In this document: positions 2,349-57,200 of the stretch, in pieces
Layout of the letters: each line of letters begins with the position of its first letter
Position numbering within the stretch: the first letter of the stretch is position 1
DNA from: Podarcis melisellensis
Lineage: Eukaryota
DNA length: 64,000 nt
Strand: one strand, 5' to 3'
NCBI GenBank assembly: GCA_964234715.1
Contig: OZ174275.1
Notes under the pieces: model-generated
What the model was told of the DNA's origin: nothing
Database searches by the model: none
The model's input: only the letters and a program-made list of their open reading frames with translations
Made by a program: the position numbers and the translations under genes

Positions 2349-5300
2349 TTAGTTGGATTGTGGTGGTATAACCTGAATATCTGGAAGGGATGAGCCTTTA
2401 CGAGGTGACTCTGATAGTGGTGCCTGCTGAGTGATGAACGCATAGACAGGAATTGTATCATCAGTGCTGTAATGGAAAGACAGTAAGAAAAGATCAGCAT
2501 TAGCACATACATTCGTCCAGATAAGCCTAACAATTGCCCTCAGTGTATTACACTTTCCATCTCAATGGTACTCAAGATTTCAGCAGCAAATCTTTTCACA
2601 TTTAGGCTATAGGCCCAAACACACCCACACTTTTAGGGATGTTTCCCCTAATAGAACTGTCTCTCCTGCTCTGAAAACGGTTCTGCTGTGTTTAGATCTT
2701 TGTGGGGGTGATCCTAGATCAGGGGTCAGCAAACTTTTTCAGCAGGGGGCCAGTCCACTGTCCCTCAGACCTTCTGGGGGGCTGGACTATATTTTGAAAA
2801 AAGTAATAATGAACGAATTCCTGTGCCCCAGAAATAACCCAGAGGTGCATTTTAAATAAAAGCACACATTCTACTCATGTAAAAACACCAGGCAGGCCCC
2901 ACAAATAACCCAGAGATGCATTTTAAATTAAAGGACACATTCTACTCATGTAAAAACATGCTGATTCCCAGACCGCCAGCGGGCCGGGATTAGAAGGTGG
3001 TTGGGCTCGATCCAGCCCCCAGGCCTTAGTTTGCCTACCCATATCCTAGATAGTTGACAACAAAGGTCCTGGCCGATACTAAGGATGTCTTCCTGTGGGT
3101 AATGTCCTCAGCCATGCACATTGGAGGTACTGTGCCCTTGTCTCCATTTTCAACCTATTTTGCAGCCGTGTACCTTAGGCCAGCTGTTAGCTGGAACTCC
3201 AAAGACTTCCCATTTTGTTGAGGAGATTGTGTACAAGGAGATTTCCTCAAACCTTGCAAATTTAGGGGTTAATTGTGTCTGCTACCTTTCCCCCAGGAAC
3301 TTGAGATTGAGGATTTTCTGATTTTCCAGGGTTGCTCCCATGGTCCATGTCCTCCTCAATGTCCTCAAAACAGCTAGGAGGTTGAGCTGTTTGGGGCACA
3401 GAAGGGGGAGCCTGCCTCTAGCTGCTTCCCCCCCCCCCACTCCTTTCTCTGAAGGGACGAGACTATCAAGACCAAGTTGTGGCACTTGCCGTGATCTAAT
3501 AATTGTAGCCTAATAGCTGCACAAACATCATGAAGAAGGAAAATCAGTTGCTGGACTTCCCCAAACCCCATGCAAGTCAACAAAGAGGTGATAAGTAGGC
3601 CAGATTGAAAACAGATAATAAACCCAGTTCCCCTGCAAGGGAAAAAGTACTGTATTTCTCAGTGTGTAAGAGAAAAAAAGAGTGTATACAGTGCCTTTAA
3701 AATGCCATTTATAGATAGGTAGCCGTGTTGGTCTGCCATAGTCAAAACAAAAAAAATTCCTTCCAGTAGCACCTTAAAGACCAACTAAGTTAGTTCTTGG
3801 TATCTGAAGAAGTGTGCATGCACACGAAAGCTCATACCAAGAACTAACTTACCGTAGTTGGTCTTTAAGGTGCTACTGGAAGGAATTTTTTTTGTTTTAA
3901 AATGCCATGTTCTGGAACAGAGCATAGCAGTGGGGGATAAAGTAGCCCTGAGCTGTTTTTCTTTCTTTCTAAATGTTTATAGAGCCGCATGACTCCACAG
4001 TAGTAATAATAATAATAATAATAATTTATTATTTATACCCCGCCCATCTGGCTGGATTTCCCCAGCCACTCTGCGCGGCTTCCAACAAAATATTAAAATA
4101 CAATAGTCCATCAAACATTAAAAGCTTCCCTAAACAGGGCTGCCTTCAGATGTCTTCTAAAAGTCTGGTAGTTGTTTTTGACATCTAGTGGGAGGGCACT
4201 CCACAAGGTGGGTGCCATTACCGAGAAGGCTCCGTGCCTGGTTCCCTGTAACTTGGCTTCTCACAGCAAGGGAACTGCCAGAAGGCCCTTGGGACCTCAG
4301 TGTCCGGGCAGAACGATGGAGGTGGAGACGCTCCTTCAGGTATACTGGACCGAGGCCGTATAGGGCTTTAAAGGTCAGCACCAACACTATAGGACTTTAA
4401 AGGTCATCACCAACACTCCCAACAACCAACTGTGCTCGGAAACGTACTGGGAGCCAATGGAGGTCTTTCAAGACTGGTGTTATGTGGTCTCGGCAGCCAC
4501 TCCCAGTCACCAGTCTAGCTGCCGCATTCTAAAGACAGTCTGCATTTTTATTATAAATGGTTTTCGGTTCAATGGGGGGAAAGCATTTCTTATTATTTCC
4601 CTTGTCATAGTCTTACCCTCCTTTCCTATTTCCACCTCATAGCATTCTCTCAAGACAGAGTCATGTCCGTTTCTTTCTATACTCCCATTTCTTCTGCATC
4701 CCCATCTGTTACCCTCCCTCCCTCCTCCACAGGTCTCTCTGCATCCTATTGGACCTCTCTGTCTCTTTTTTTCTCTAATTAGAGTCTACATCTCCATCTC
4801 TCAGCAACCCTGCTTTTTTCTTCCTTTGTGGCCATCTTCCATATCTACCTTTCTTTCACTGTGTAAATTGCTGGAAGAGTGTTGCCTTGTGTCTGTTGAT
4901 ATCAAACTCAATGAAGGAGTCAGACATGAACTAGCTACAACATGCTGGAAAAGATAATGCTAATTCCATCACATATATCCAAAAAGATAGAAAGTGAAGA
5001 TGTAGTAATACAAGCATTCTATCTCCTACCTTATTTTCTGTGGCTTTCGGTTGGACCTAGTCTGTCTTACATGACACTGGCAGGATAGATCTTCCCATGC
5101 TGGCAGGGTAACATGGGAATCGCCCATGCAAGTACTAGCTACCAATGCCCTTTCCGGAAAGTGGGACAGTGCTACAAAAAGAACTACTAAGTCACTAGAT
5201 AAATACAAATTCTCTTACCCAGCGTTCTTTGGTTCTACTAAATTTATTGTGTCTGGAGTTATGGGAACCAAAGCTTGACCGTATTTCCTATAAAACAGAA

Positions 5301-24100: not shown

Positions 24101-27100
24101 CTTTTGGTGAAGGAAAAGCAGTGGAAGAGGACGTGGAACAGGGCTGGGGAGAGGTGTGGCCTGTGGATGGGGCATGAACTGGTAGGGTTCTGTGGACCAG
24201 ATAGAAAGGCCTGGAGGGCTGCATTGGCCCCTGAGCCTGAGATTTCCTACCCCTAATCTGACTAACAATGACAGACTGGAGTAGAGGTTTTTTGTTTCCT
24301 CACAAGCATGGCTTATCAGTCAGCCTACATTTACCAAATGATCTTCAACTCACTTTCCATACCTTTGTGATGAACAGTGAATTATTGTTTGTAACTTATC
24401 GGGAAGTACAGGCAAAACAGCACAGTCCCTGCCTGCATATTTGCAAGCCAAAATGTTTTCTGAGATGGGAAACAGTGAGCAGTGCAAAGCTATCCCACCA
24501 TACTTATTGCGCGCTAAACTCAGCCTGGATCCCCCTCACATGTTCAACCTGCCAAAGTGGTCAAGTGAATTGTCCCTAAGCTGACAAGCCTGTTAAGCAT
24601 GTCCACTAAGAGTAAAGATAATACATTTTTTTTGTGGGTTAGAAATGAAGTCAAATATATTTCAAGAGCGGAATTGTGGAAGGTCTCAAATGGAAAACAG
24701 TGAAGGCTGATGGGGGTGGAGACTAGAACATGTTCAAAACCTAGGGAAGGATTGGAAGAGATTATGCTTGAACAGTGATAGAGGTGGAAATCTAGCAGCA
24801 GTGAATATCTTTCTGGATTGCATTTGGGTCTCAAGATAGATTTCAGTTACTTTTCCTTCCTTTTTGCAGGTATACTAGCCTGGATCACTGTGAACTTTTT
24901 GACAGGTAATTACTGCTTTGTGATTTCAGTTTTGAGGCTTGGATAGAGTCTGTTCCGTAAAAACTGAGTAGGCAGTTGGATATTTATAGTGCAAATTTTC
25001 AGAAGTCTCCTGCTGAAATCCATTCAGGGCTGCAAATCATAGATAACATGGAAACTCTCTGGGCATGTGGGTAGTCTTTGAACTTCTTCAATGTTCCCTG
25101 CAGGGCAGTTGTATGGCCGGAATCAGCAGACGGTGGGGACCCTGGATCTGGGAGGAGCCTCAACCCAGATCACATTCCTGCCACAGCGGGAGGTGAGGAA
25201 TCTCGAGATTGCCCAAATGTTGGATAATTTGGTGCAGGTGTCCTATTTATTTCATGTTTTATTTCATTTAGATCTAGGCTGCTTTAATCTGGCAGGAGCA
25301 ACCCAGTCAGATGGGCGGGATACAAATAATAAATTGTTGTTATTATTAAATTATTATAATAATATTCATTAGGTTGTTAGGCTTCTTTGTAAAAGTGTTT
25401 TAAATACCAGAAATAATGTGAAATGGTATGCATTTGATAATGTTGCTTTTCAAGCTGTGACTTCCAAAATGTTACAGCTTGTTCTTTAAAGTAGTGCCTG
25501 TATCTTATTATCATACGTATATTCTGACCAGGGAACGTGGGTGGTGCTGTGGTCTGAACCACTGAGCCTCTTGGGCTTGCCATTCGGAAGGTTAGCGGTT
25601 CGAATCCTCGCAACGGGATGAGCTACCGTTGCTCTGTCCCAGCTTCTAACCTAGCAGTTCGAAAGCACGCTAGTGCGAGTAGATAAATAGATACTGCTGC
25701 AGCAGAAAGATAAGCGGTGTTTCCATGTGCTCTGGCACTCATTGCAGTGTCCCAATGCAGTAGTAACGTCATGCTGGCCACGTGACCTGGAAAGCTGTCT
25801 GTGGACAAACGCCAACTCCCTCGGCCTGAAAGCGAGATGAGCGCCACAACCCCATAGTTGCCTTTGACTGGACTTAACCATCCAGGGGTCCTTTACCTTT
25901 TTTCCTTATTGTGAGCTTTCCAGCATCATCAATTTATGACTGTGACTACATTCATTATCAACCTTCATAGAAGATTTTCTTCCTTACTACAGTAGAGCAG
26001 ATGTTTTCTGAACATTAATAGCTTAAGATTATCAAAATTCTCTTGTCTCTTCAAGACTTGTGTGAATGTTATATGCTGTACTAATGTTACACAAATGTAT
26101 CTTGAAATTTTAAAGTCACTGAAGAATCCTTTTTCATTATCCTAATTTTAGGAAACCCTAGAGCAAACACCAGTAGATTTCCTTACCTCATTTGAAATGT
26201 TCAACAGCACTTACAAGCTCTACACACACAGGTGAGTGAGGCAGTTCTATGCAAATGACTATTTTTAAGGACACTAGTTACAGATAGGTAGCCGTGTTGG
26301 TCTGCCATAGTCAAAACAAAACAAAATTCCTTCCAGTAGCACCTTAAAGACCAACTAAGTTAGTTCTTGGTATGAGTTCTTGGTATAGTGAAAACGTTAG
26401 GATAGATAGCTGTGATGAGCCTGTTGAGGACTCTTTAACTATTGCAGTCGTTAAGAGTCGTCAACAGGCTCATCATAGCTATCTGCCAATCACCCATTCC
26501 CACCACCCTTCTGAGTAATACCCCTCCCCACCTTTTCACTATATAGAAGGGTCTGGTGACTTCTGTTTCAGTGTATCTGAAGAAGTGTGCATGCACACGA
26601 AAGCTCATACCAAGAACTAACTTAGTTGGTCTTTAAGGTGCTACTGGAAGGAATTTTTTTTTGTTTTAAGGACACTGTTAGGTATTTGCCAGATGTAATA
26701 TTGCCTTAATAATTTGTATTGCTTATTCTGAAGTCAGCATCACATATCTTGCTGGTTATCACAACCCCACATGTGTCTTTATTTTCATTATAATGAACAG
26801 GTAGTCTGTGGATTACTGTAAAGAACCACATGCTAACATTTCATACATGGGCTTAGCAAGGAGGAGGCTGTTTTAGCAGAGTATTGATCTTATATCCTTG
26901 TTCATAAAATTGCCTAGTCTTGTAAGTGGGATAGGATGAACTCCGACTTTAACCAAGTGCTGTTTGGCCTTCTTCATTTTACAGCTATTTGGGGTTTGGT
27001 CTGAAGGCTGCACGGCTTGCTACGTTGGGAGCCCTGGAAATGGAAGGTACAGTCAGACAAAATAGCTTTGTGTTCGTGTGTGTGGATGGACTCAGGGGGG

Positions 27101-43823: not shown

Positions 43824-46800
43824 CTTACTCCAATCTCCCCTCTCTCCCCCCGCCTCCCCCTTTCTTTCTTTCTTTCTTCCTTCCTCTTCTTCCCTTTTCT
43901 CCCTCCACCCTTTACATATAGCCTATTTGTCTGTCTCTGTTTCTAAGCGCACTCCCAACCCCAATTTCCACCTTAACTGGACCCCAGTACCCCTTTTGGA
44001 TATATACAACCCCCTCCTAAACACATATTTCCCCTGGCCCCACCCCTCTAATCTCTTGCATCTCTACCTGCTAACCCCCCTCCCTTTATATGAACTGTCT
44101 GTCCGTTAGTCTACCCATCTCTGCTTACCTGCCCTCCCCCCCAGCCTCGGCGGCATCGCTGAGGCAACTACAGAAAACCCAAGAGAAGTTCTTAAAACAC
44201 AGGCTAGAAGTGACACAAATGACCACCTAATCCAAACGCTCTGTAAAAGCCACCAGCCAACAAAGCCTGATCAGCTCAACAACCCAACAATACCCAGGAA
44301 TCACCACTGCCACAACTCCTAACCACCACACGCCCTACCCCAAGTGGACGCCAAGCCAACCTCAAACCAAAACTATCAAGGAGACCGAGATGACACCAAC
44401 CAGGGAGATGGCAAACAATGCTAAGATGGCAACTCCCCTTCAAGATGATGACCACCCAATAACGAAACGAGATCTGAGGGAAATGGAAGCAAGATTAGAA
44501 GAAACACTGAAGGCCACAATGGCTCCCATGCAGGTACTAATCAACAATCTAACCTCCAAAGTGGAAGCTCTAGAGAACAAAAACCAAATGCAAGAAAAAA
44601 TAATAGAGCAATACCGGGAGGAGAACGCACGTGTGAACAAGAAACTGGACGAACTGGTAAACCAAATGGAAGCAGAACACAGAGAGATGAAAATTAAACA
44701 AGCTGACCTTGAAGATCGCAATAGACGTTGTAACATCCGCTTCCGCAACTTTCCTGAAAAAACAGAGGAGAAAAGCCCAGCAGACCTAATTATACGCTGG
44801 CTGAAAAACACAATCCCAAGCCTGAAACTCGAGGCGGATGACTTGGAGAGGGCACACAGAGCCCTAAAACCTATGCCAAAACCCAGCGCCCCCCCAAGAG
44901 ACATCATTGTATGCTTCACACGCTACAAAAAGAAGGAAGAGATATGGCACCACCTCAGAAACTCAAGCAACCTTCGATACGGAGAAACCCCCATTCTGGC
45001 CCTACAAGACCTATCTCAGGATACCCTAAACTGGAGGAAAAGCCTGCGCCCATGCACCCAGCGTCTCCAACAAGCAGGGATCAAATACCGATGGGGCTTC
45101 CCCTTCCGCCTCATTGCAACAACCAATACAACACAACACATGGCTACCAACATACCTGAGGCCCTGCAACTACTAAAGAACCTTGAACTCGACCTCCCAC
45201 CGGAATGGCAACCGACAAACCCACCAAATGACAGCCCCAACCAGGAGGAAACAACAGCAAACAACTGGACGACGGTACAGAGGAAAAAGAATCAACAGAG
45301 GCGGCAGAACAACGCAAACCAATACAGGCAAGCATCATGCTCAGAACCGTCCCGCCGGCCATACGACACCAGAAACCAGACCAAGATTAACCAAACCAAT
45401 TCATCGTAGATGGACAACCCTACAATAACAACAACAACCGCAGCTGAATGAAGCAACCAGGAAAAAACCACAAACCGAAGGACTGGTGATTTCTCCCCCC
45501 CTTTTCCCCCTCTTCCCCCCCCCCAAAACATAGATTTAGTTAACACCATCAACATCCCCCCAGCCCCGCACCCCCACAGAAACCCCCACCCCAACACCAG
45601 TCCAGACGACCTCAACCACATTCCCCATCACCCACACCTTCAACATCCTCATACTCCATACTAAGGAAAAACAACTCCAACCTTAATAACACAACCCACA
45701 ATCAGGCTAAAATCTGATACCCAACCAGCAATATGGTGGCACCAGAGCGTACCAGCACCCACATCCCCACCCCAACACACCAACAATGTTGCTCATAACA
45801 TTGGCAACATTGCTTACGAACCTTATACCTGATAGCGACGTTACAAAGTCACTTCACACTGTCTCGCTGATCACCCCCCATCGCAAACAACAGGGGGGAT
45901 GGCCTGTCCTTGAACATGGCCTTCCACACCAGCTGAGACCTAGGACCAACCGGCTAAATGCCAGATGGCCCAAAATACCCCAAACAAACGCCTATATGAC
46001 TACATATAGGAAACTCCCTACAACTTACCCCCTACTCTTTAACCCAAATCTCACTCTAATCCCACTAGCCCCCCACCCTCCACACCCTAGGTCAGCGCAA
46101 CCCCACTGGTTCTTTAAACAACGCGAAGAGAGAGACACAAGACAACCCGAACGGGTTGGCAGGGAATCGCCCCACATAATAGATAAGCAAGATGGCTAGC
46201 CTAAAAGCAATTACATTAAATGTGAGGGGGCTGGGAAACCCCATCAAAAGAAAACGCATCACCTCATACATAAACACCATGAAACCACACATCACCTTCC
46301 TACAAGAAATACACAACCCACCCAAAGGCAGCAAACTCTTGAGCGACCCCCGCTTCAATCAACAGTGGGTCGCACAAGGCTCAGGGAAAGCTCGTGGTGT
46401 AGCCATAATACTCAGTAGAGACCTGAACTTCACTGCCACAACAGTCCTCAAGGACAAAAAAGGCAGATTCATTTTTGCTAAAGGGACACTAGATGGCAAA
46501 ATCAAACTGACAATCGGCTCCATATATGCCCCAAACACGAAACAATTAGAATTCTTCCAGAAGATACTAAACAAATTCCTCTCCTTCTCTGAAGGGGAAG
46601 CAATCCTAGGAGGGGACCTCAACCTAAATATGAAAGGTTTATCCCTGAAAGATATCCACCCCACAACCCCATGGGCAACCTTCCTCCGAAGGAAACCCCC
46701 AACAACTAGGAACTCTTACAAGTTACTAAAAATGCTAAAAAACAGGGGTCTCTATGACATTTGGGGTGAGCAAAACCCGGGAGACATCAGCCATACATTC

Positions 46801-49800
46801 CAATCGGGACGCCATGATACAGTGTCCAGACTGGACAGCATTCTACTCACACAGGGTCTGATCCCCTCAGTAGAATCAACAAACATAGGTAACATTAAAA
46901 TCACAGATCACGCCCCAGTAGAAGTCATTGTTAAAATAGGAGAAGGAACACAAACCACCCCTTCATGGTCCTTCAGTCCCATCCTAACTACAAACAAACA
47001 AATTAGAGAGAGTCTCACAAAAACCCTCCAAAACTACTTCAAGGAAAACGATGTAAACAATATAACAACCCCCCTCCTATGGGACGCAATGAAAGCGGTC
47101 ACCAGAGGAGCTTGCATAAAAGAGAAAACATTCCTTAAAAAACAAACCTCCTCAAAAATTAGCAAAATAGAACAAGACATCACAGCCCTCTCATCACGCT
47201 ATAAACAAACAGGATCTAAAAAACTCCTCAAACTTATAGAACAAAAAAGGAGAGAACTAGACTCCCTAGAAATTAACAAAACAATGATCAACATTCTATA
47301 CTCTAAACAACGTTTCTATGAATATGGAGGGAAAAACTCCAGATTACTAGCAAATAGATGTAGGAAAAAAGCACTCAAAACAAGAATACACTGCATCACC
47401 AAAAAAGACGGCAACATAACATTCTCCCCCAAAGAAATAACCTCAGAATTTGCAGAATTCTACTCCAACCTATACACCTCCCATAACCCACCAGAGAAGG
47501 AAATCAGAACATTCCTAGCAGGACTGACCATGCCTACCCTAACTGATGAGGAACAGGAATTCATGGACAGCCCTATCACCCCAGAGGAAATAGATGCGGT
47601 CCTCAAAAACCTGAAACCACACAAAGCCCCAGGCCCAGATGGCTTCACAGCAGAATTCTATAGGAAATTCAAAGAACCCTTGATGCCCTACATGACCCGC
47701 CTATTCAACGACATCATAAAAGGGGGCCCCATCCCCAAAACCTGGACCCACTCCAAAATAGTCTCCATCCCCAAACCACTAAAAGATAGCCTCAAAGTAG
47801 AATCATACCGCCCAATCTCATTAATAAACCAAGACTACAAGATATTCACATCAATCTTGGCCAACCGCCTAAAAACCTTCCTACACAAATTAATAGCCCC
47901 AGACCAGACTGGCTTTGTCCCTGGCCGCAATATAACAGACCCCATCAGGAAACTACTGAACCTGATCGAACACAGCAAGGCAACCAAACTCCCATTGACA
48001 ATTATGTCCCTAGACATCCTCAAAGCCTTTGACTGCTTGGAGTGGAAATACATATTAGCAGTACTAACTAACATGAAATTTGGCCCCAACTTCCTACAAA
48101 TCCTCAAACAAATATACTCCCAAGCCTCAGCAAAATGCAGAACTAATAATATGGATTCTAATACTATAGCTATCCAAAGAGGCACGAAACAAGGATGCCC
48201 ACTGTCTCCCTTCTTATTTATCCTGGCTCTGGAACCCTTAGCAATCCGCATCCGAGCAGCCACAGACATCAAGGGAGTGGAAATAAAAGGCAGAACCTAT
48301 AAATTAGGGCTCTTTGCAGATGACCTAATGGTCACAACACCAGACCCCATAAGCACAGCAACCTCCCTAATCAGAGAACTCAACACATTTGCAATGGTGT
48401 CGGGCCTACAGGTAAATTTTACAAAGTCAGAAGCTATGTGCTTTAACACCCCTCCTCACACCCAAAAAGAACTCACGAAGGTCACCAAAATAAAACTTTG
48501 CCACACCAAGTTCAGATACCTAGGGGTACAAATAACCAGAAACCTCAATAAATTGTACCTCCACAACTACAAGCCCCTGTGGCGACAAATTAACAAAGAC
48601 CTAAAGAGATGGAATAACATGAATTTCACTCTCTCAGACAAAATAGCCATAATCAAAATGATCACACTCCCAAAACTAACCTACCTATTCCAAACCCTCC
48701 CAATCTGGATCCCCTCAACCCAACTCTGCAGTTGGCAGAGAAAACTACACTCTTTCATCTTCTCACATAAAAAACCAAGAATAAGCTCCAAATGCCTGCA
48801 CCTCCCCACCTCAGAAGGAGGATGGGGAATCCCCAACATAGAAGCATATTACAATGCCAACCAAATACGCCATATAATCCCATATATACTAGAAGATGAG
48901 ACAAAACAATGGGTACACCTAGAGAGGGACACAATTGAAAACACCTGCACCACAACATACCCACTCCTCCCAAACAAACTAAAGAAAATTCCCACAACGC
49001 TTAACAGGTACACACAGACCATGCTCAAAGCATGGAAAACACAAATAGGCAAACTATCCCCAAGCCCATCCCCACTAATCCCCCTGGCGCACCACCCATT
49101 ATTCTACCATGCAGCACAAAACCTCCAGACAAAAACCTGGCGAACCAAAGGCTTATATCGCCTAATAGACTTTTATAAAAATAACAAACCCTTGTCAACA
49201 CAAGAAATACAAGACAAACTAGAAGACACCCAAATGACCTGGTTAACACAACACCAACTACATGCCCTCTTAAACAACCCAACAGTAAAATCAGCAGCAA
49301 CTAGGCCCCTGACAACCTTCGAAAACCTCCTCCTAACAACAAAGGGAAACGGTAAAGGGACGGTATCCGCAATATACAAAATACTACTCCAAAATCCCGC
49401 AAATCCCCTAGACGCAATCAAAAAACAATGGGAGAATGACATAGGCTATGAGATTAACCCCACTCAATGGACCAGAATGTGGTCTAAACCCCCCTTTAAA
49501 TCCATATCAATGAAAAGAAAAGAACTCACACTGAAACTCACCTACAGGTGGTACCTAACACCAAGGAAACTAGCGCTAATACACCCAGGAACCTCACCAA
49601 AATGCTGGAGAGGGTGCACCTCCACAGGCACATACCTCCACATGTGGTGGGAGTGTCCCAAAATTCAACTATTCTGGACAACAGCCATACAAGAAATATG
49701 TAAAATAACTAAGCAAGTAATAGACATCACCCCAGAATTGGCCCTACTAAACATCTTCCAAGACAACAATGCCCATTTACACCACAAAGAACTCATAACC

Positions 49801-52800
49801 CACCTGCTCTCAGCAGCCAGAAACATCATAACCAGACACTGGAGAGACCTGTCAGGAGTAAGCATGGACCAATGGTTCCAAATAGTATGGGAAACAGCCC
49901 TACTAGAAAAATTAACTAATAAACTGAAACTGACACGGGGACAAACAGAAGAAGACGCCTTCACCCCGGTATGGCTCCCCTTTATCACATACACAGCCCA
50001 ACAGGACAATGACAATAATCCACCAACAGCATACAAATCAATATGGCTAACCTGATCCAAAACACCCACCCACCTCACTCACACACGAAAACAAAGATCA
50101 CCACAGCCAATCACAAGCAAACAATCACACCCTAGGCCAACCCCAACCTCTCTCACCACCAAAGAAACACAAGTGAACAACGCAAGCACGCTGACACCAA
50201 ACTCTACATACATTAAGCATAATAGAAACACCGCCACCCGACCCCACTCCCATCCATCTTCCCTCTCTCCACCCCCTTTCTTTTTTCTTTCTTTTTTCTT
50301 CTCCCCCTAATGCCTCAACAAATGAAACAGATTTGTAAAAACGCTACGTGGAAGAAGAAGAAAAAAAAATACGAGGCACTACACTTCTGTAAAACAAGAA
50401 AATCCTTAATAAAAAATATTTTAAAAAAAAATAAGCAGAGAGTTCTAAAAGTAGATGCCCCAAAACATGAGTTCAGTTATATGTACACCTCCCACCTAAT
50501 GGTTTCTGAGGACATTGAGCAAGTGGCAAGGATATGGTACACTTCCTGGAGGCTAAGTTCAGGTAATTAACAAATAACTAGTTAGCCTTAATCAACTGAA
50601 CATGCACATGGAAGCAGAGGCAGAGGGTGCATGACTGAGTTTTTCTCTTTTCACACTTTTGAGGTCTGTGCAAAGGGGGAACCCACCAGGAAATACTAAT
50701 GTTCCTGTTGAGAGTATAGTTTACCCATCTCCCTGCAAAGAATATATATGAACCCTTTGCACAAGACTCTAGAAACAAAATAAAATGTCCTTGCTTGCAT
50801 GGACTTCAGAATTACATTACCACCCACAGGCACAGTATATATGTTGCAGTACCAGGCACCTGCATCCGCCGAAATGGCTTGATTCTCATGCTGCAAATAT
50901 GATCCCAAGCACCAAAACCTAGAAAAGAAAGAGAACGTTAAAGGAATTGTTCTGACACTCTGCAAACTTTTAATGGGGAACCCTCAGGACCAATTCAAAT
51001 TCCCTCACTATTTCCATCTGGTTTCTTTCTACTCTCCCTTATTTGCTTGTGGTTTGACTGTGGCCCAACTGTCTAGTTGGGATGTGGAGGGTTGTAAGAA
51101 ACAAAAGCAGTGAATCCCCAAGGATGGTGAAAGCAAGGACACTGTTATGGAAGCTTCAGGGCAAACCTTGGAGTAGCAATGAGTAACCTGTATTCCTCCA
51201 AATGCTTAGTTGTCTGTATAAACTATTTTAGGGAGATAAATAAGAAAAAGCACCCGTCATTTCACAGATGAGCAGATTTGCAGTTATGAAGAGGAAAGTT
51301 CTAAGATGTTTGTTAGAAGCTGACTAAAGGAATGGTGCACCATTTAATTATACTCGACAATTTCTAAGAAAATAGCCCCAATGCACAGAGCCAAGCAATT
51401 ATGAACAGAAACAGTGACGTAATCTGGACATGGCCCAATAAGCAACTAACTAGGAAATCATAACACAAAGAAAATCCTGCTGAATCAGACCAAATGCTCA
51501 TTTTGTCCAGAATTTTGTTCACAAAGTGGCCACAAGGACATGTGCATAATAGTACCCTCTTGTTTATGTTTTTTCAGCAACTGGTATTCAGACTTGTATA
51601 GCCTGATATTGATGGGAATACATGACTAAGATAAAGGTAAAGGATCCCTGGACAGTTAGGTCCAGTCAAACAGATCTTGATAGCCTTAACTTCCATGAAT
51701 TTGTCTAATTCCCTTTTAGAGTTGCCCAGCTTTTAAGCTGCCCTTTTAAAGCAGCTATCACTACATATTGTAGTAAGAAACTCCAGAATTTCACATCAAC
51801 AGTCTATTTTATTAGACGCTAGCTACAACACTAGAGGATTACTGAGGCCAGAAATATGACAGGCTGGTAACCATTTTTGACCTCCAAACAAAGAGCTCAT
51901 GTGTGAACCTGAAAATTAATTTCAACAAGTGACCGTTACAAGTGCATTCTACTCCAGGTGACTCAAGCCAGTTCTACAATGTATGGGGTTTATTTTCCCC
52001 ATCTATCCCAAGCCAGTATCCTATGCGGCACACAGGGTTTTATAGACTCACATCTGTAGTTTCATATTCCAACATCAAAACACCATGCACGCATAGCTGG
52101 CAACCAAATAACGGGCGAATGCTATACTTACTACTGAGAAGTGTGGCTGAACCAGGGGTGATAGCACTGACTCTATTACTGTAAGTCTTGGGCAACTGGT
52201 TAGACACTTTCTTTGGACGGGCTTCAAGTAGCAGAATTTTCTTATCAGACAGATGAACATCATGCCCTTATTAAAAGAAAAAGCCAGATGTTTAATAACA
52301 TTTTAACCAAGATTAATCAATAATTTAACATTCTGCAACAGGAGTTTACAAGAGATCTATTTTACATCTTCCCCTGAACATGCAGAATTGTTTAGCACTC
52401 TTTAACTCCAAAAAGTGAAAGCTAACAGTTCTAGCTTTTCTCTTTTAGAGCCTAAATAAACTGTTGATTTAAAAAATAGCTACTAAAAGCTTTTGAGATG
52501 ACTTGAATCTTGTGGCACTTTAAAAACAAAAATTAAATTATAGTATAGATTTTTGTAGAATACAGTCCACCTCATCCAATACATGATGTGTTATCCTGAG
52601 TTTCTGATATCTAAACACATGGTTGCAGCAGAGGGAGGAAGGGGTTGTAAGCAGTGAAGTCAAAGTAAAATTAAATGCAGAAATATGTCAGTGTACATAT
52701 GAATAAATATTCACAAAAACAACTATGGGCAGCACTTGAAACGGACTCTGATGAAATGGACACTAGTTCTTTCAAGCTTATGGCATAATCGAAGTGTTAG

Positions 52801-54267: not shown

Positions 54268-57200
54268 TATTTGTACCCCAGCCACTCTGGGCAGCTTCCA
54301 ACAAGACCAAAAATACACTAAAATGTTACACATTAAAAACTTCCCTGAACAGATGTCTTCTGAATGTCAGGTAGTTGTTTATCTCTTTGACATTTGACGG
54401 GAGGGCGTTCCACAGAGCGGGCGCCACTACCAAGAAGGCCCTCTGCCTGGTTCCCTGTAGTTTTGCTTCTCGCAATGAGGGAACCACCAGAAGGCCCTCA
54501 GTGCTGGACCTCAGCGTCCGGGCAGAACGATGGGGCTGGAGACGCTCCTTCAGGTATACAAAGTGCAAAGTGGTATACAGTATTTCGAATGGAAATGCAT
54601 TTTCAAAATAGTTTTTTCTTTTGTGTTTGAAACCTTTGTTTTGTTGTTCTGATTTGCCTAGGTGTTTCCAATTAAAGCACAGTCTCCAGACTTGCAACTG
54701 GGTAGTAATATTTCTCTGCCCGATGACGGTGAGCTGCTAGATTTCCTCCAGTCAGAGGAACAAATAGTAGGTGCCTCGAGTTCAGGAGAGGATTTTTACG
54801 ACTCGCTTCAGGCCCTCAAAAGGAAAAACAGACAATGTTTGTTAGAACTAGGTCTGATGTACCAGGTACAGTTGGAAAACCACCAGGAACCACCAGAGAA
54901 CAAGGAGCTGGAAGACTTTTTCCAGGAAAATGGAAGATTGACATTGCCATCAAAGTTCCATGAAGCTTTGAGGTGAGATGCAAGAGAATCTATTGAAATC
55001 CATACATTGATTCTCCTACACAGGCATAGAGTTTTTACAGTAGTCTTGTGTGCTCCTGTTGGACAACTGATCAAATATAATAATGAAACAGATCTTAGAA
55101 TATCATTATTCCTAAACTATCTCCTTTCATTTATTCAGAGTTCTCAAATATAACCTTTCTTCTGATTTATTTGCCAATGATAACATTTTTTTACCATATC
55201 CTCAGATCTGGCAACCTAAGAAGGTTCAATTCATTGACTAACATCACTGCTGATAACCCAAAAGATGAGCAAAATCATCATTCGTTTCTTCAGTCCTTTT
55301 CAAGATCAAAGAGTGCTTCAGCTACATGGATCTCCCCTATTACTGTCCCTCAACCCTTCAATATGACACTTCGAGAAGCTTGCAGAAAATTGAAGTCCCA
55401 TGCATTGTTTGAAATTGAATCAGCTGAATACAAAAGACAAAGCCTAGAAGAAGCTGAATGCCAGAAACAGTTCAGAGCACAACCTGTGCCTGCTCACATC
55501 TATCTGCCACTCTACCAAGAAATAATGGAAAAGAATGAAATTCGCAGACAAGTGGAAACACAAAAGAGAAGAGAACTACTCCTTTCAATGCAAAAACCCT
55601 TCAGTTTTCAGGAAAAAGAAGAAAAACGAAAGGACATCATCAGACAGAAGATGCTAGAAGTTTTGACTCCAGTTGAGAAATCAGTACCAAAAGTTAGGAA
55701 GAAGATCCCCAAGTCCACCTATGAACCAAGGTTTGGGGATAAATTCAAAGGTAAAACAGCTTTTAATGCACTGTCAATAATACCTAATGGTGGTATGAAG
55801 GTATCTTCTTCATCTGCTATAGGAGACATTCCAGTTAGTAGATTCATTGTCTGTCATACCAGTACAAAAGAAATAAAAGAAAATAGGCCTTTTATCCTGC
55901 CATACCACAAAACACATTTCTTATCTCAGAGTGAGTAGGGCCAATCTGTGGAATTAGTAAAAACAGGACTCAGGGAAGGTGATCAACAATCACATAAAAA
56001 TTAGGAGGAAACTTCTCTGATGCCACAGATTTGCAATGGTTGATGAATTGGGCATCCTCAGGGCCTTGGCCTCTGCCCCACCTCATAAACCTCTGGAGCT
56101 GATTAGCCTGAAAAACAGTGATGGCTAGGAACTGTATCCTACTCTTTAAGGATGCCAACCTGTACCATCCCTTTGGTTGAATTCTTCTTAATAGTAAAAT
56201 GTATCCAGAAATGAATTGCTCCTCTTGGCTTGTTCCTGAAGCAGGGCTATGCAAATGTCATTTTATTATTATTATTTTTATATTAAATTTCTATACACTC
56301 CTTGATCTGAGGATCACTGGGCAGTTTACAATATAAAAACACATAACACAGTAGCATACAGAAACTATGCCCCCCCCACTGTTTAAAAGGCAATGGATTG
56401 TTTAATTAGCCAAAGGTCTGGGAGACTTCATGTTGATCATTTTCCTTTCTAGAATACACAAGTTTTTGAAAAAGAATAGAAAAAGAAATAGAAATATAAA
56501 AAGAATGAGATTATTAAGTTGTGCTGTATTATATATCCCATAACTAGTTTTTTATTTGGAAAAGATACATGTTAGGCGGTTTCAAATGTTCTGGATTTTC
56601 AGTTATTGCTTTTGCTTTAACGCTTGGCTCAACCATTAGCCTCTCTTGTTATTAGTGCCATTAACACTTTTCTTCTGTTGCATTAGCCAGATTTACATAC
56701 CCTCTCCCAGCCCAGTCATTACTGTTCATCACTGTTGCTTTTACTCCCCAGAAGCTGAACTCTTACGAAAAATCCGTATTCAGATGAGAGCCAAGGATTT
56801 ATTGGAAAGTTCCTGGGCTCCTATTGAGCTTGGCAAGAGAAAAAAAGGATCCCAAATTACCTCTATAAACAGGGAGAAAAAACTGAGCTTTCTGCAGGAT
56901 AACTTCAGTTTTAAACCAAGAATCAATTCATCTGTGCCTGACTTTGAAGGACTTTACTGGGCATTCCAGAGAGAAGCTTTAAGCAAACGAGAAATCAAAG
57001 AAACGACTCATAATAAACCATTCAGACTTAGAACATCTAATCTCTGTTGCAAACATCAAGTGCCTAATCCGGGGATGATGGTAAGAGGGATTGCTTTTAT
57101 CTTTGTACTGCTTTGTATTCCTTTACATACAAATCACTCATGAGTGCAAAACACCAAATATACTTTACCATCCGTTTAACTCAGTGTTGAGATAGTTTTA

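Follow-up and report, generated by a model that had tools for sequence, protein, structure and literature searches.

We analyzed a 64,000-nt stretch of Podarcis melisellensis DNA (contig OZ174275.1 of assembly GCA_964234715.1; hereafter the window) in which an intron of an ENTPD5-like gene carries a complete type I hammerhead ribozyme core at positions 26573–26610 of the plus strand. The motif is real and far beyond chance, and it is an ordinary copy that belongs to routine repeat annotation: the surrounding stretch, 26276–26667, is in all likelihood a young, non-coding, heavily 5′-truncated insertion of a Penelope-like element (PLE), carried as a passenger in an intron that is removed normally. 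That the motif influences the host gene through self-cleavage, as the original prediction had put forward, is unlikely. How the element inserted, and that the host gene is unaffected, we infer from the evidence below.

The core can be read directly from the sequence. Each conserved position is in place (C3, U4, G5, A6, G8, A9, G12, A13, A14, the A15.1–U16.1 pair, and C17), helix II is closed by the G10.1–C11.1 pair (G26585–C26598), and helix III is down to 1 bp within the palindrome AGCU (26602–26605, A-GC-U). The original prediction had listed these parts correctly but overlooked the extra A at 26584, which is no defect, because a nucleotide at this place is a hallmark of the minimal hammerheads of PLEs (PMC4209133). 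We searched both strands of the 64 kb with a descriptor (CUGANGA, 0–1 extra nucleotide, helix II of at least 4 bp closed by G-C, GAAA, 0–8 nt, UH, and helix I of at least 4 bp), which matched only at 26573–26610 and at 3786–3851, both times with one extra nucleotide, and gave 0 matches in 200 first-order Markov resamples. The 30-nt core itself is present twice in the window, identically, against an expectation of 0. Together, the specificity of the descriptor, the resamples, and the duplicated core rule out a chance origin. An ATG in loop II runs into a stop after 9 codons, leaving no open reading frame (ORF). Helix II with its loop is also a perfect 14-nt palindrome, through which two copies are predicted to dimerize at −17 kcal/mol relative to two monomers, in preference to the AGCU of helix III.

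The features of the motif are those described for PLEs. Cervera and de la Peña (2014, PMC4209133) give four hallmarks of the minimal hammerheads of these elements, which arose independently of those authors' descriptor: one nucleotide inserted between A9 and G10.1, the G10.1–C11.1 pair, a palindromic 15.2–16.2/loop 3, and a short helix I. At 26573–26610 each of them is present, with a helix I of 4 bp and a helix II of 5 bp and a 4-nt loop, versus the 4–5 bp and 6–8 bp given for helices I and II of PLE minimal hammerheads. What marks a canonical type I hammerhead, namely an Rfam score, a stable helix III, and contacts between loops I and II, is absent. The Rfam scoring that had been proposed as a check returned no hammerhead family in the whole window at the gathering score, nor at E ≤ 10 in 26250–26720 and 3680–3930, where generic long-hairpin matches, far below threshold, were the only ones. 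This is expected, because helix III has 1 bp and loop–loop contacts are lacking.

The architecture of the insertion points the same way, and with it the earlier assignment of a minimal type I hammerhead within a Penelope-like remnant holds. The insertion around the motif (copy B; the one around the second match is copy A) is ~390 nt long and combines an inverted, 5′-truncated copy with a direct copy and a 36-nt tail at one end. It is bounded in AT-rich DNA by the target-site duplication (TTTT)AAGGACACT, and family similarity in reads and contigs ends at 26276/26277. A 64-nt inverted repeat (26313–26376 versus 26604–26667) has its inner edge within the motif. Two further pairs of arms, of 32 nt (26404–26435/26453–26484) and 19 nt (26384–26402/26525–26543), involve the patchwork between the left arm and the direct copy, where family depth falls to zero at 26389–26414, indicating that this part is specific to copy B; these inverted pieces make copy B an imperfect fold-back along its whole length. 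The tail occurs at 26277–26312 and 3709–3743 and is missing from the right ends of both copies in the window, while in other family copies its reverse complement follows 26660 (loose read ends GTTTTGACTATGG…). An inverted 5′-truncated copy beside a direct copy, a one-sided tail, and an AT-rich target-site duplication agree with Craig et al. (2021) and Frangieh et al. (2024, PMC11167929), who describe a 30–40-nt tail on one side as characteristic of PLEs. In the Anolis element Poseidon_Ac, the tail spans the interval from one internal start site of reverse transcription to the other, the distal one lying 111–118 nt into an ORF that begins at hammerhead A9 (PMC11167929). Counted from A9 (26583), comparison by eye places two alternative element ends in the Podarcis family at about +81 and +113–117, which by analogy may correspond to the Poseidon_Ac start sites.

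The insertion fills about half of a 752-nt intron (26233–26984, plus strand) of a gene of the GDA1/CD39 family. The flanking exons (26152–26232 and 26985–27046) are in frame across GT/AG borders, with the donor GTGAGT after 26232 and the acceptor TTTACAG before 26985. Between the predicted cut site, 26606/26607, and these exons lie 374 and 378 nt, and the motif is on the sense strand, as originally placed (about 375 nt from each). In Xenopus, 42–44% of hammerhead-bearing retrozyme copies overlap introns, and an intronic position is therefore ordinary. Each exon was compared with the databases singly; Pfam GDA1_CD39 matches plus-strand exons at 21.2, 25.1, and 34.0 kb (profile positions 6–32, 158–179, and 388–414), and the gene has a weak match to apyrases/NTPDases in the PDB. 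The exons that flank the intron (27 and 20 aa) are too short and have no Pfam match. Together with a FAM161B exon downstream, these matches fit ENTPD5, given the sequence and gene neighborhood of human ENTPD5.

The repeat family is young and extremely abundant. Copy A has a core identical to that of copy B, held at the tip of a ~60-bp hairpin that acts as helix I, such that helix I comprises 4 bp in copy B and 18 contiguous bp (~60 with a bulge) in copy A. Copy A is 22.7 kb upstream of copy B; the first coding exon found, at ~21.1 kb, is 17 kb downstream of copy A. In their common parts the two differ by indels only, and a sensitive blastn search with the element found no older, diverged fragments in the window. 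We placed reads from a DNA run (X15) and two bulk RNA-seq runs (raw reads) on the intron, 26233–26984, only. X15 reads cover the unique intron flanks at a depth of ~54 with no differences and contigs extend from both flanks into the element, so the insertion is present in that sample. The bin holding the hammerhead sums to 3.26 million, a summed depth and not a copy number, and summed family depth is ~10^4–10^5 times that of the flanks. No position of 26573–26610 varies in at least 10% of reads or contigs; because the family is so young, this reflects youth rather than selection. An old, single-copy, domesticated hammerhead was considered and rejected, given arms that are 98% complementary, near-identical copies 22.7 kb apart, and the family depth.

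Two edges of the family stand out in the reads. Depth rises 3.4-fold at 26571–26573, where many loose ends and joints gather, indicating that most family copies start at the 5′ edge of helix I; this common start is directly 3′ of an acceptor-like TTCTGTTTCAG (26561–26571). RNA reads that run past 26660–26661 fall into two classes, one continuing into the reverse complement of the tail and the other into a sequence beginning ATCCATTCCACTG (agreement 0.77–0.88, 91–118 reads), which may stem from a single strongly expressed locus or from a longer variant of the family.

Whether copy B could reach the active shape was gauged by the cost, in ensemble free energy, of forcing helices I and II together with an open core. 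Taken alone, 26573–26610 has the hammerhead scaffold as its minimum-energy fold, and within 26560–26625 the scaffold costs +0.8 to +2.1 kcal/mol. When the whole element is folded to its minimum energy (−199 to −206 kcal/mol, z = −22.9), G26374 takes up C17 and the left arm takes up the 3′ strand of helix I. The price of the active fold is +6.6 kcal/mol in a transcript covering 26233–26610 (equilibrium fraction 2e-5), +12.7 kcal/mol in 26233–26616 (1e-9), and +21.2 kcal/mol in 26233–26630 and longer transcripts (1e-15). The direct copy without the inverted arm still incurs +9 to +10 kcal/mol, because 26377–26386 pairs with 26607–26616. In copy A (3709–3898), a hammerhead-compatible fold costs +1.1 kcal/mol (fraction 0.17), because its arms themselves form helix I; set against as much as +21.2 kcal/mol, this ranks copy B below copy A in predicted competence. 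As the duplex of the inverted arms holds both C17 and the helix I 3′ strand, the catalytic fold of copy B would be essentially unpopulated. In trans, the AGCU/AGCU contact, which stands in for the non-nested double hammerhead, is worth −2.5 kcal/mol, and pairing of this kind between separate transcripts is predicted to be negligible.

RNA reads bear on cleavage at the level of the family. The repeated part of the intron attracts 762–829 RNA reads, which occur in both orientations, and 87–90% of them continue into unlike sequence and thus derive from other loci. In RNA run X23, depth is unbroken over the cut site (242, 277, and 268 in three bins spanning 26571–26648). At a threshold of 5 molecules and a fifth of the adjacent depth, neither RNA run has a pile-up of starts or ends at 26606/26607 among family reads, the only site listed being 26556.

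These data weigh on the alternatives to a passenger insertion, of which a non-catalytic effect on the host survives best, although we consider it unlikely. The intronic hairpin could act as double-stranded RNA, subject to adenosine-to-inosine (A-to-I) editing or dicing, could alter the spacing of the splice sites, or could supply a cryptic 3′ splice site, the TTCTGTTTCAG at 26561–26571. The stability of the folded element speaks for the first of these, as do strand-specific base changes confined to RNA: T>C at 26345, 26356, and 26364 in first-mate-plus reads of the RNA runs (up to 16/29 reads) and A>G at 26362 in first-mate-minus reads of X23 (5/9), all nearly absent from contigs. Such changes fit A-to-I editing of the arm duplex but could equally reflect a species or subfamily difference, as the RNA and DNA runs come from differently coded organisms. 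The candidate acceptor has a pyrimidine tract and a CAG directly 5′ of helix I, and a parallel exists in D. virilis Penelope, in which the 3′ end of an intron maps to the 5′ end of helix I. Against an effect of any of these kinds, the unique parts of the intron have 0 RNA reads, and inverted repeats in introns are common and mostly harmless.

Self-cleavage within the ENTPD5 pre-mRNA, whether by the monomer co-transcriptionally or in trans, with altered expression or splicing as the outcome, is very unlikely. An intact sense-strand core placed midway along a short intron invites this reading, as do the ability of an isolated 38–66-nt segment to take the hammerhead scaffold and the existence of domesticated intronic hammerheads in amniotes. 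The real context of copy B, however, imposes a fold penalty of 6.6–21 kcal/mol, the motif has neither a helix III to speak of nor tertiary contacts, and the insertion is young and one of very many. Moreover, PLE minimal hammerheads are barely active even as dimers. They are thought to act as dimers through the palindromic helix III, and to this extent the original prediction stands; that they do so efficiently does not, for cleavage of single motifs is undetectable and that of dimers and trimers is described as "some, though low," 8/9 Xenopus retrozyme dimers yield no product, and the Anolis PLE hammerhead depends on PLE protein for cleavage and leaves no RNA-seq ends at its cut site (Frangieh et al. 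2024, PMC11167929). The proposed cut in the ENTPD5 intron likewise finds no footing in family RNA, which crosses 26606/26607 without gathered ends. Action in trans with other transcribed copies fares no better, given the weak AGCU/AGCU contact and a nearest second copy located far ahead of the first coding exon found. A consequence for ENTPD5 is thus not supported, and for copy B it is disfavored by the element's own modeled structure.

By analogy with Anolis, sense intronic copies might be cut with the help of PLE protein at times when an autonomous element is expressed, as might happen in the germline. This is conceivable because truncated copies retain the reverse-transcription start region and the Anolis hammerhead needs PLE protein, yet we give it only a slim chance. 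Were it so, thousands of host pre-mRNAs would be nicked whenever PLEs became active in a burst, with compact copies such as 3709–3898, whose scaffold is hammerhead compatible, being sensitive and copy B much less so. Least probable is a non-LTR retrozyme, a tandem hammerhead repeat giving rise to circular RNA instead of a PLE insertion, which a short non-coding repeat bearing a type I hammerhead and the proposal that retrozymes are non-autonomous PLE derivatives might suggest, and which we rejected because there are no tandem units: copies A and B each have a single hammerhead with no direct or tandem repeat, and no joint indicating a circle is listed for the RNA runs.

Several points count against the passenger PLE insertion that we favor. 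Copies A and B are both short, truncated ends, and the window has no ORF for a PLE reverse transcriptase (RT) or GIY-YIG domain, so the assignment to PLEs derives solely from architecture and motif type. Equilibrium folding ignores kinetics, helicases, and proteins, and a local hammerhead might form transiently during transcription. The test for RNA ends detects only sites at which at least a fifth of molecules start or stop, and with 0 reads on the unique intron flanks, the RNA evidence concerns the family as a whole; in addition, the RNA runs are from "organism A," and the best DNA holder is "organism C."

The insertion most likely arose by the mechanism published for PLEs. Reverse transcription would start at two internal sites, which lie ~80 and ~115 nt 3′ of the hammerhead core, such that insertions longer than ~95 nt would all carry the minimal hammerhead. 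The inverted copy would then be added where short microhomologies (GTAT at the junction of copy A) allow template switching or snap-back, producing a fold-back. The motif would have its role, if any, within the cycle or ribonucleoprotein of the retroelement, probably assisted by PLE protein; in the ENTPD5-like pre-mRNA, the 64-bp arm duplex would sequester C17 and the 3′ strand of helix I. The features of both copies are collected in Table 1.

Table 1. Features of the two PLE copies and of the hammerhead motif in the window
Feature	Position	Strand	Basis or remark
Copy A, compact: tail, 60-nt left arm, hammerhead core 3800–3837 at hairpin tip, right arm	3709–3898	+	Sequence, inverted repeats
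Copy A target-site duplication, (TTT)AAAATGCCAT	3699–3708 / 3899–3908		AT-rich DNA
Copy B left target-site duplication, AAGGACACT	26267–26275	.	9–13 nt repeated at 26668–26676; may reach into preceding T run
36-nt PLE tail, inverted, left end only	26277–26312	-	Identical in copy A
Left arm, inverted 5′-truncated copy of element 3′ end	26313–26376	-	64 nt, 98% complementary to 26604–26667
Copy-specific patchwork, further inverted pieces of direct copy	26377–26440	.	Inverted repeats; family depth
Direct copy upstream of hammerhead, pseudo-long terminal repeat (pLTR)-like, ending in acceptor-like TTCTGTTTCAG	26441–26572	+	Family depth in DNA and RNA; sequence
Minimal type I hammerhead motif	26573–26610	+	Sequence, descriptor; PLE minimal hammerhead features of PMC4209133
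Helix I 5′ strand, GUAU	26573–26576	+	Sequence
C3–A9, CUGAAGA	26577–26583	+	Sequence
Extra A between A9 and G10.1	26584	+	Sequence
Helix II GUGUG/CACAC with loop CAUG	26585–26598	+	Sequence
G12–A15.1, GAAA	26599–26602	+	Sequence
Loop III, GC	26603–26604	+	Sequence
U16.1	26605	+	Sequence
C17	26606	+	Sequence; predicted cut directly 3′ (26606/26607)
Helix I 3′ strand, AUAC	26607–26610	+	Sequence
Right arm, direct-copy 3′ end, from loop III and C17 to T-rich end	26604–26667	+	Inverted-repeat match to left arm
Copy B right target-site duplication	26668–26676	.	Sequence

Elsewhere in the window, an apparently intact long interspersed nuclear element (LINE) occupies 44390–50055 on the plus strand. 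Its 1287-aa ORF (46192–50055) matches Exo_endo_phos and RVT_1, as in a LINE with an APE domain, and is the only RT ORF of the window; the 339-aa ORF upstream of it (44390–45409) has no Pfam match. Downstream of the ENTPD5-like gene, a FAM161A/B-family exon is found at 55171–55938 (plus strand, Pfam E = 1.4e-32), which fits the human order ENTPD5–COQ6–FAM161B. The window includes 416 N.

For a member of a young, high-copy repeat family, an intact ribozyme core in an intron is no evidence of host function. Local context sets competence, in that identical cores stand ~20 kcal/mol apart in their access to the active fold, and the folding penalty offers a simple way to rank the many genomic copies ahead of experiments. 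The boundary of the family at an acceptor-like site, which echoes the D. virilis Penelope intron, may interest those who work on PLE transcripts.

Among known systems, the motif is closest in kind to the PLE minimal hammerheads of PMC4209133, with which it shares type I topology, the CUGANGA/GAAA/UH core, the extra nucleotide, G10.1–C11.1, a 4-bp helix I, and a 1-bp helix III within a palindrome. Those, too, occur mostly as single motifs in truncated copies across the genome and are known in reptiles (turtle and snakes). The Podarcis motif differs in having a 5-bp helix II with a 4-nt loop in place of 7–8 bp, in belonging to a sequence family specific to this lizard genome, and, in copy B, in an inverted arm that competes with helix I. 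The domesticated hammerheads of amniotes in RECK, CTCL, and DTNB (de la Peña and García-Robles 2010, as summarized in PMC6155905) are likewise of type I, intronic in protein-coding genes, and oriented in the sense direction; as that summary presents them, however, they are canonical, have loop–loop contacts, and occupy orthologous sites across birds and mammals, whereas the motif described here is minimal and sits in a recent, abundant repeat with no sign of conservation. Non-LTR retrozymes (Cervera and de la Peña 2020; Li, Clavereau and Pollet 2026, preprint) resemble the family as short non-coding repeats with a type I hammerhead that are probably mobilized by PLEs and have many intronic monomer copies, but they consist of tandem units that each carry a hammerhead, unlike the single motif, fold-back insertion, and target-site duplications seen here.

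The comparison with Poseidon_Ac of Anolis carolinensis (PMC11167929) is the most detailed. Both have C17, an extra nucleotide after A9, and a 4-nt palindrome that forms a helix III of 1 bp and its 2-nt loop; in both, element ends and a tail lie ~80 and 115 nt downstream of the core, targets are AT rich, and RNA-seq lacks ends at the cut site. Protein-assisted cleavage has been demonstrated for Poseidon_Ac, whereas the Podarcis hammerhead is a predicted one. Poseidon_Ac reads CUGAGGA-U with the palindrome ACGU, where the Podarcis family has CUGAAGA-A and AGCU, and its extra U forms the start codon of an ORF that has no counterpart here. The same layout in a different sequence therefore identifies the Podarcis family as a relative of Poseidon_Ac rather than Poseidon_Ac itself.

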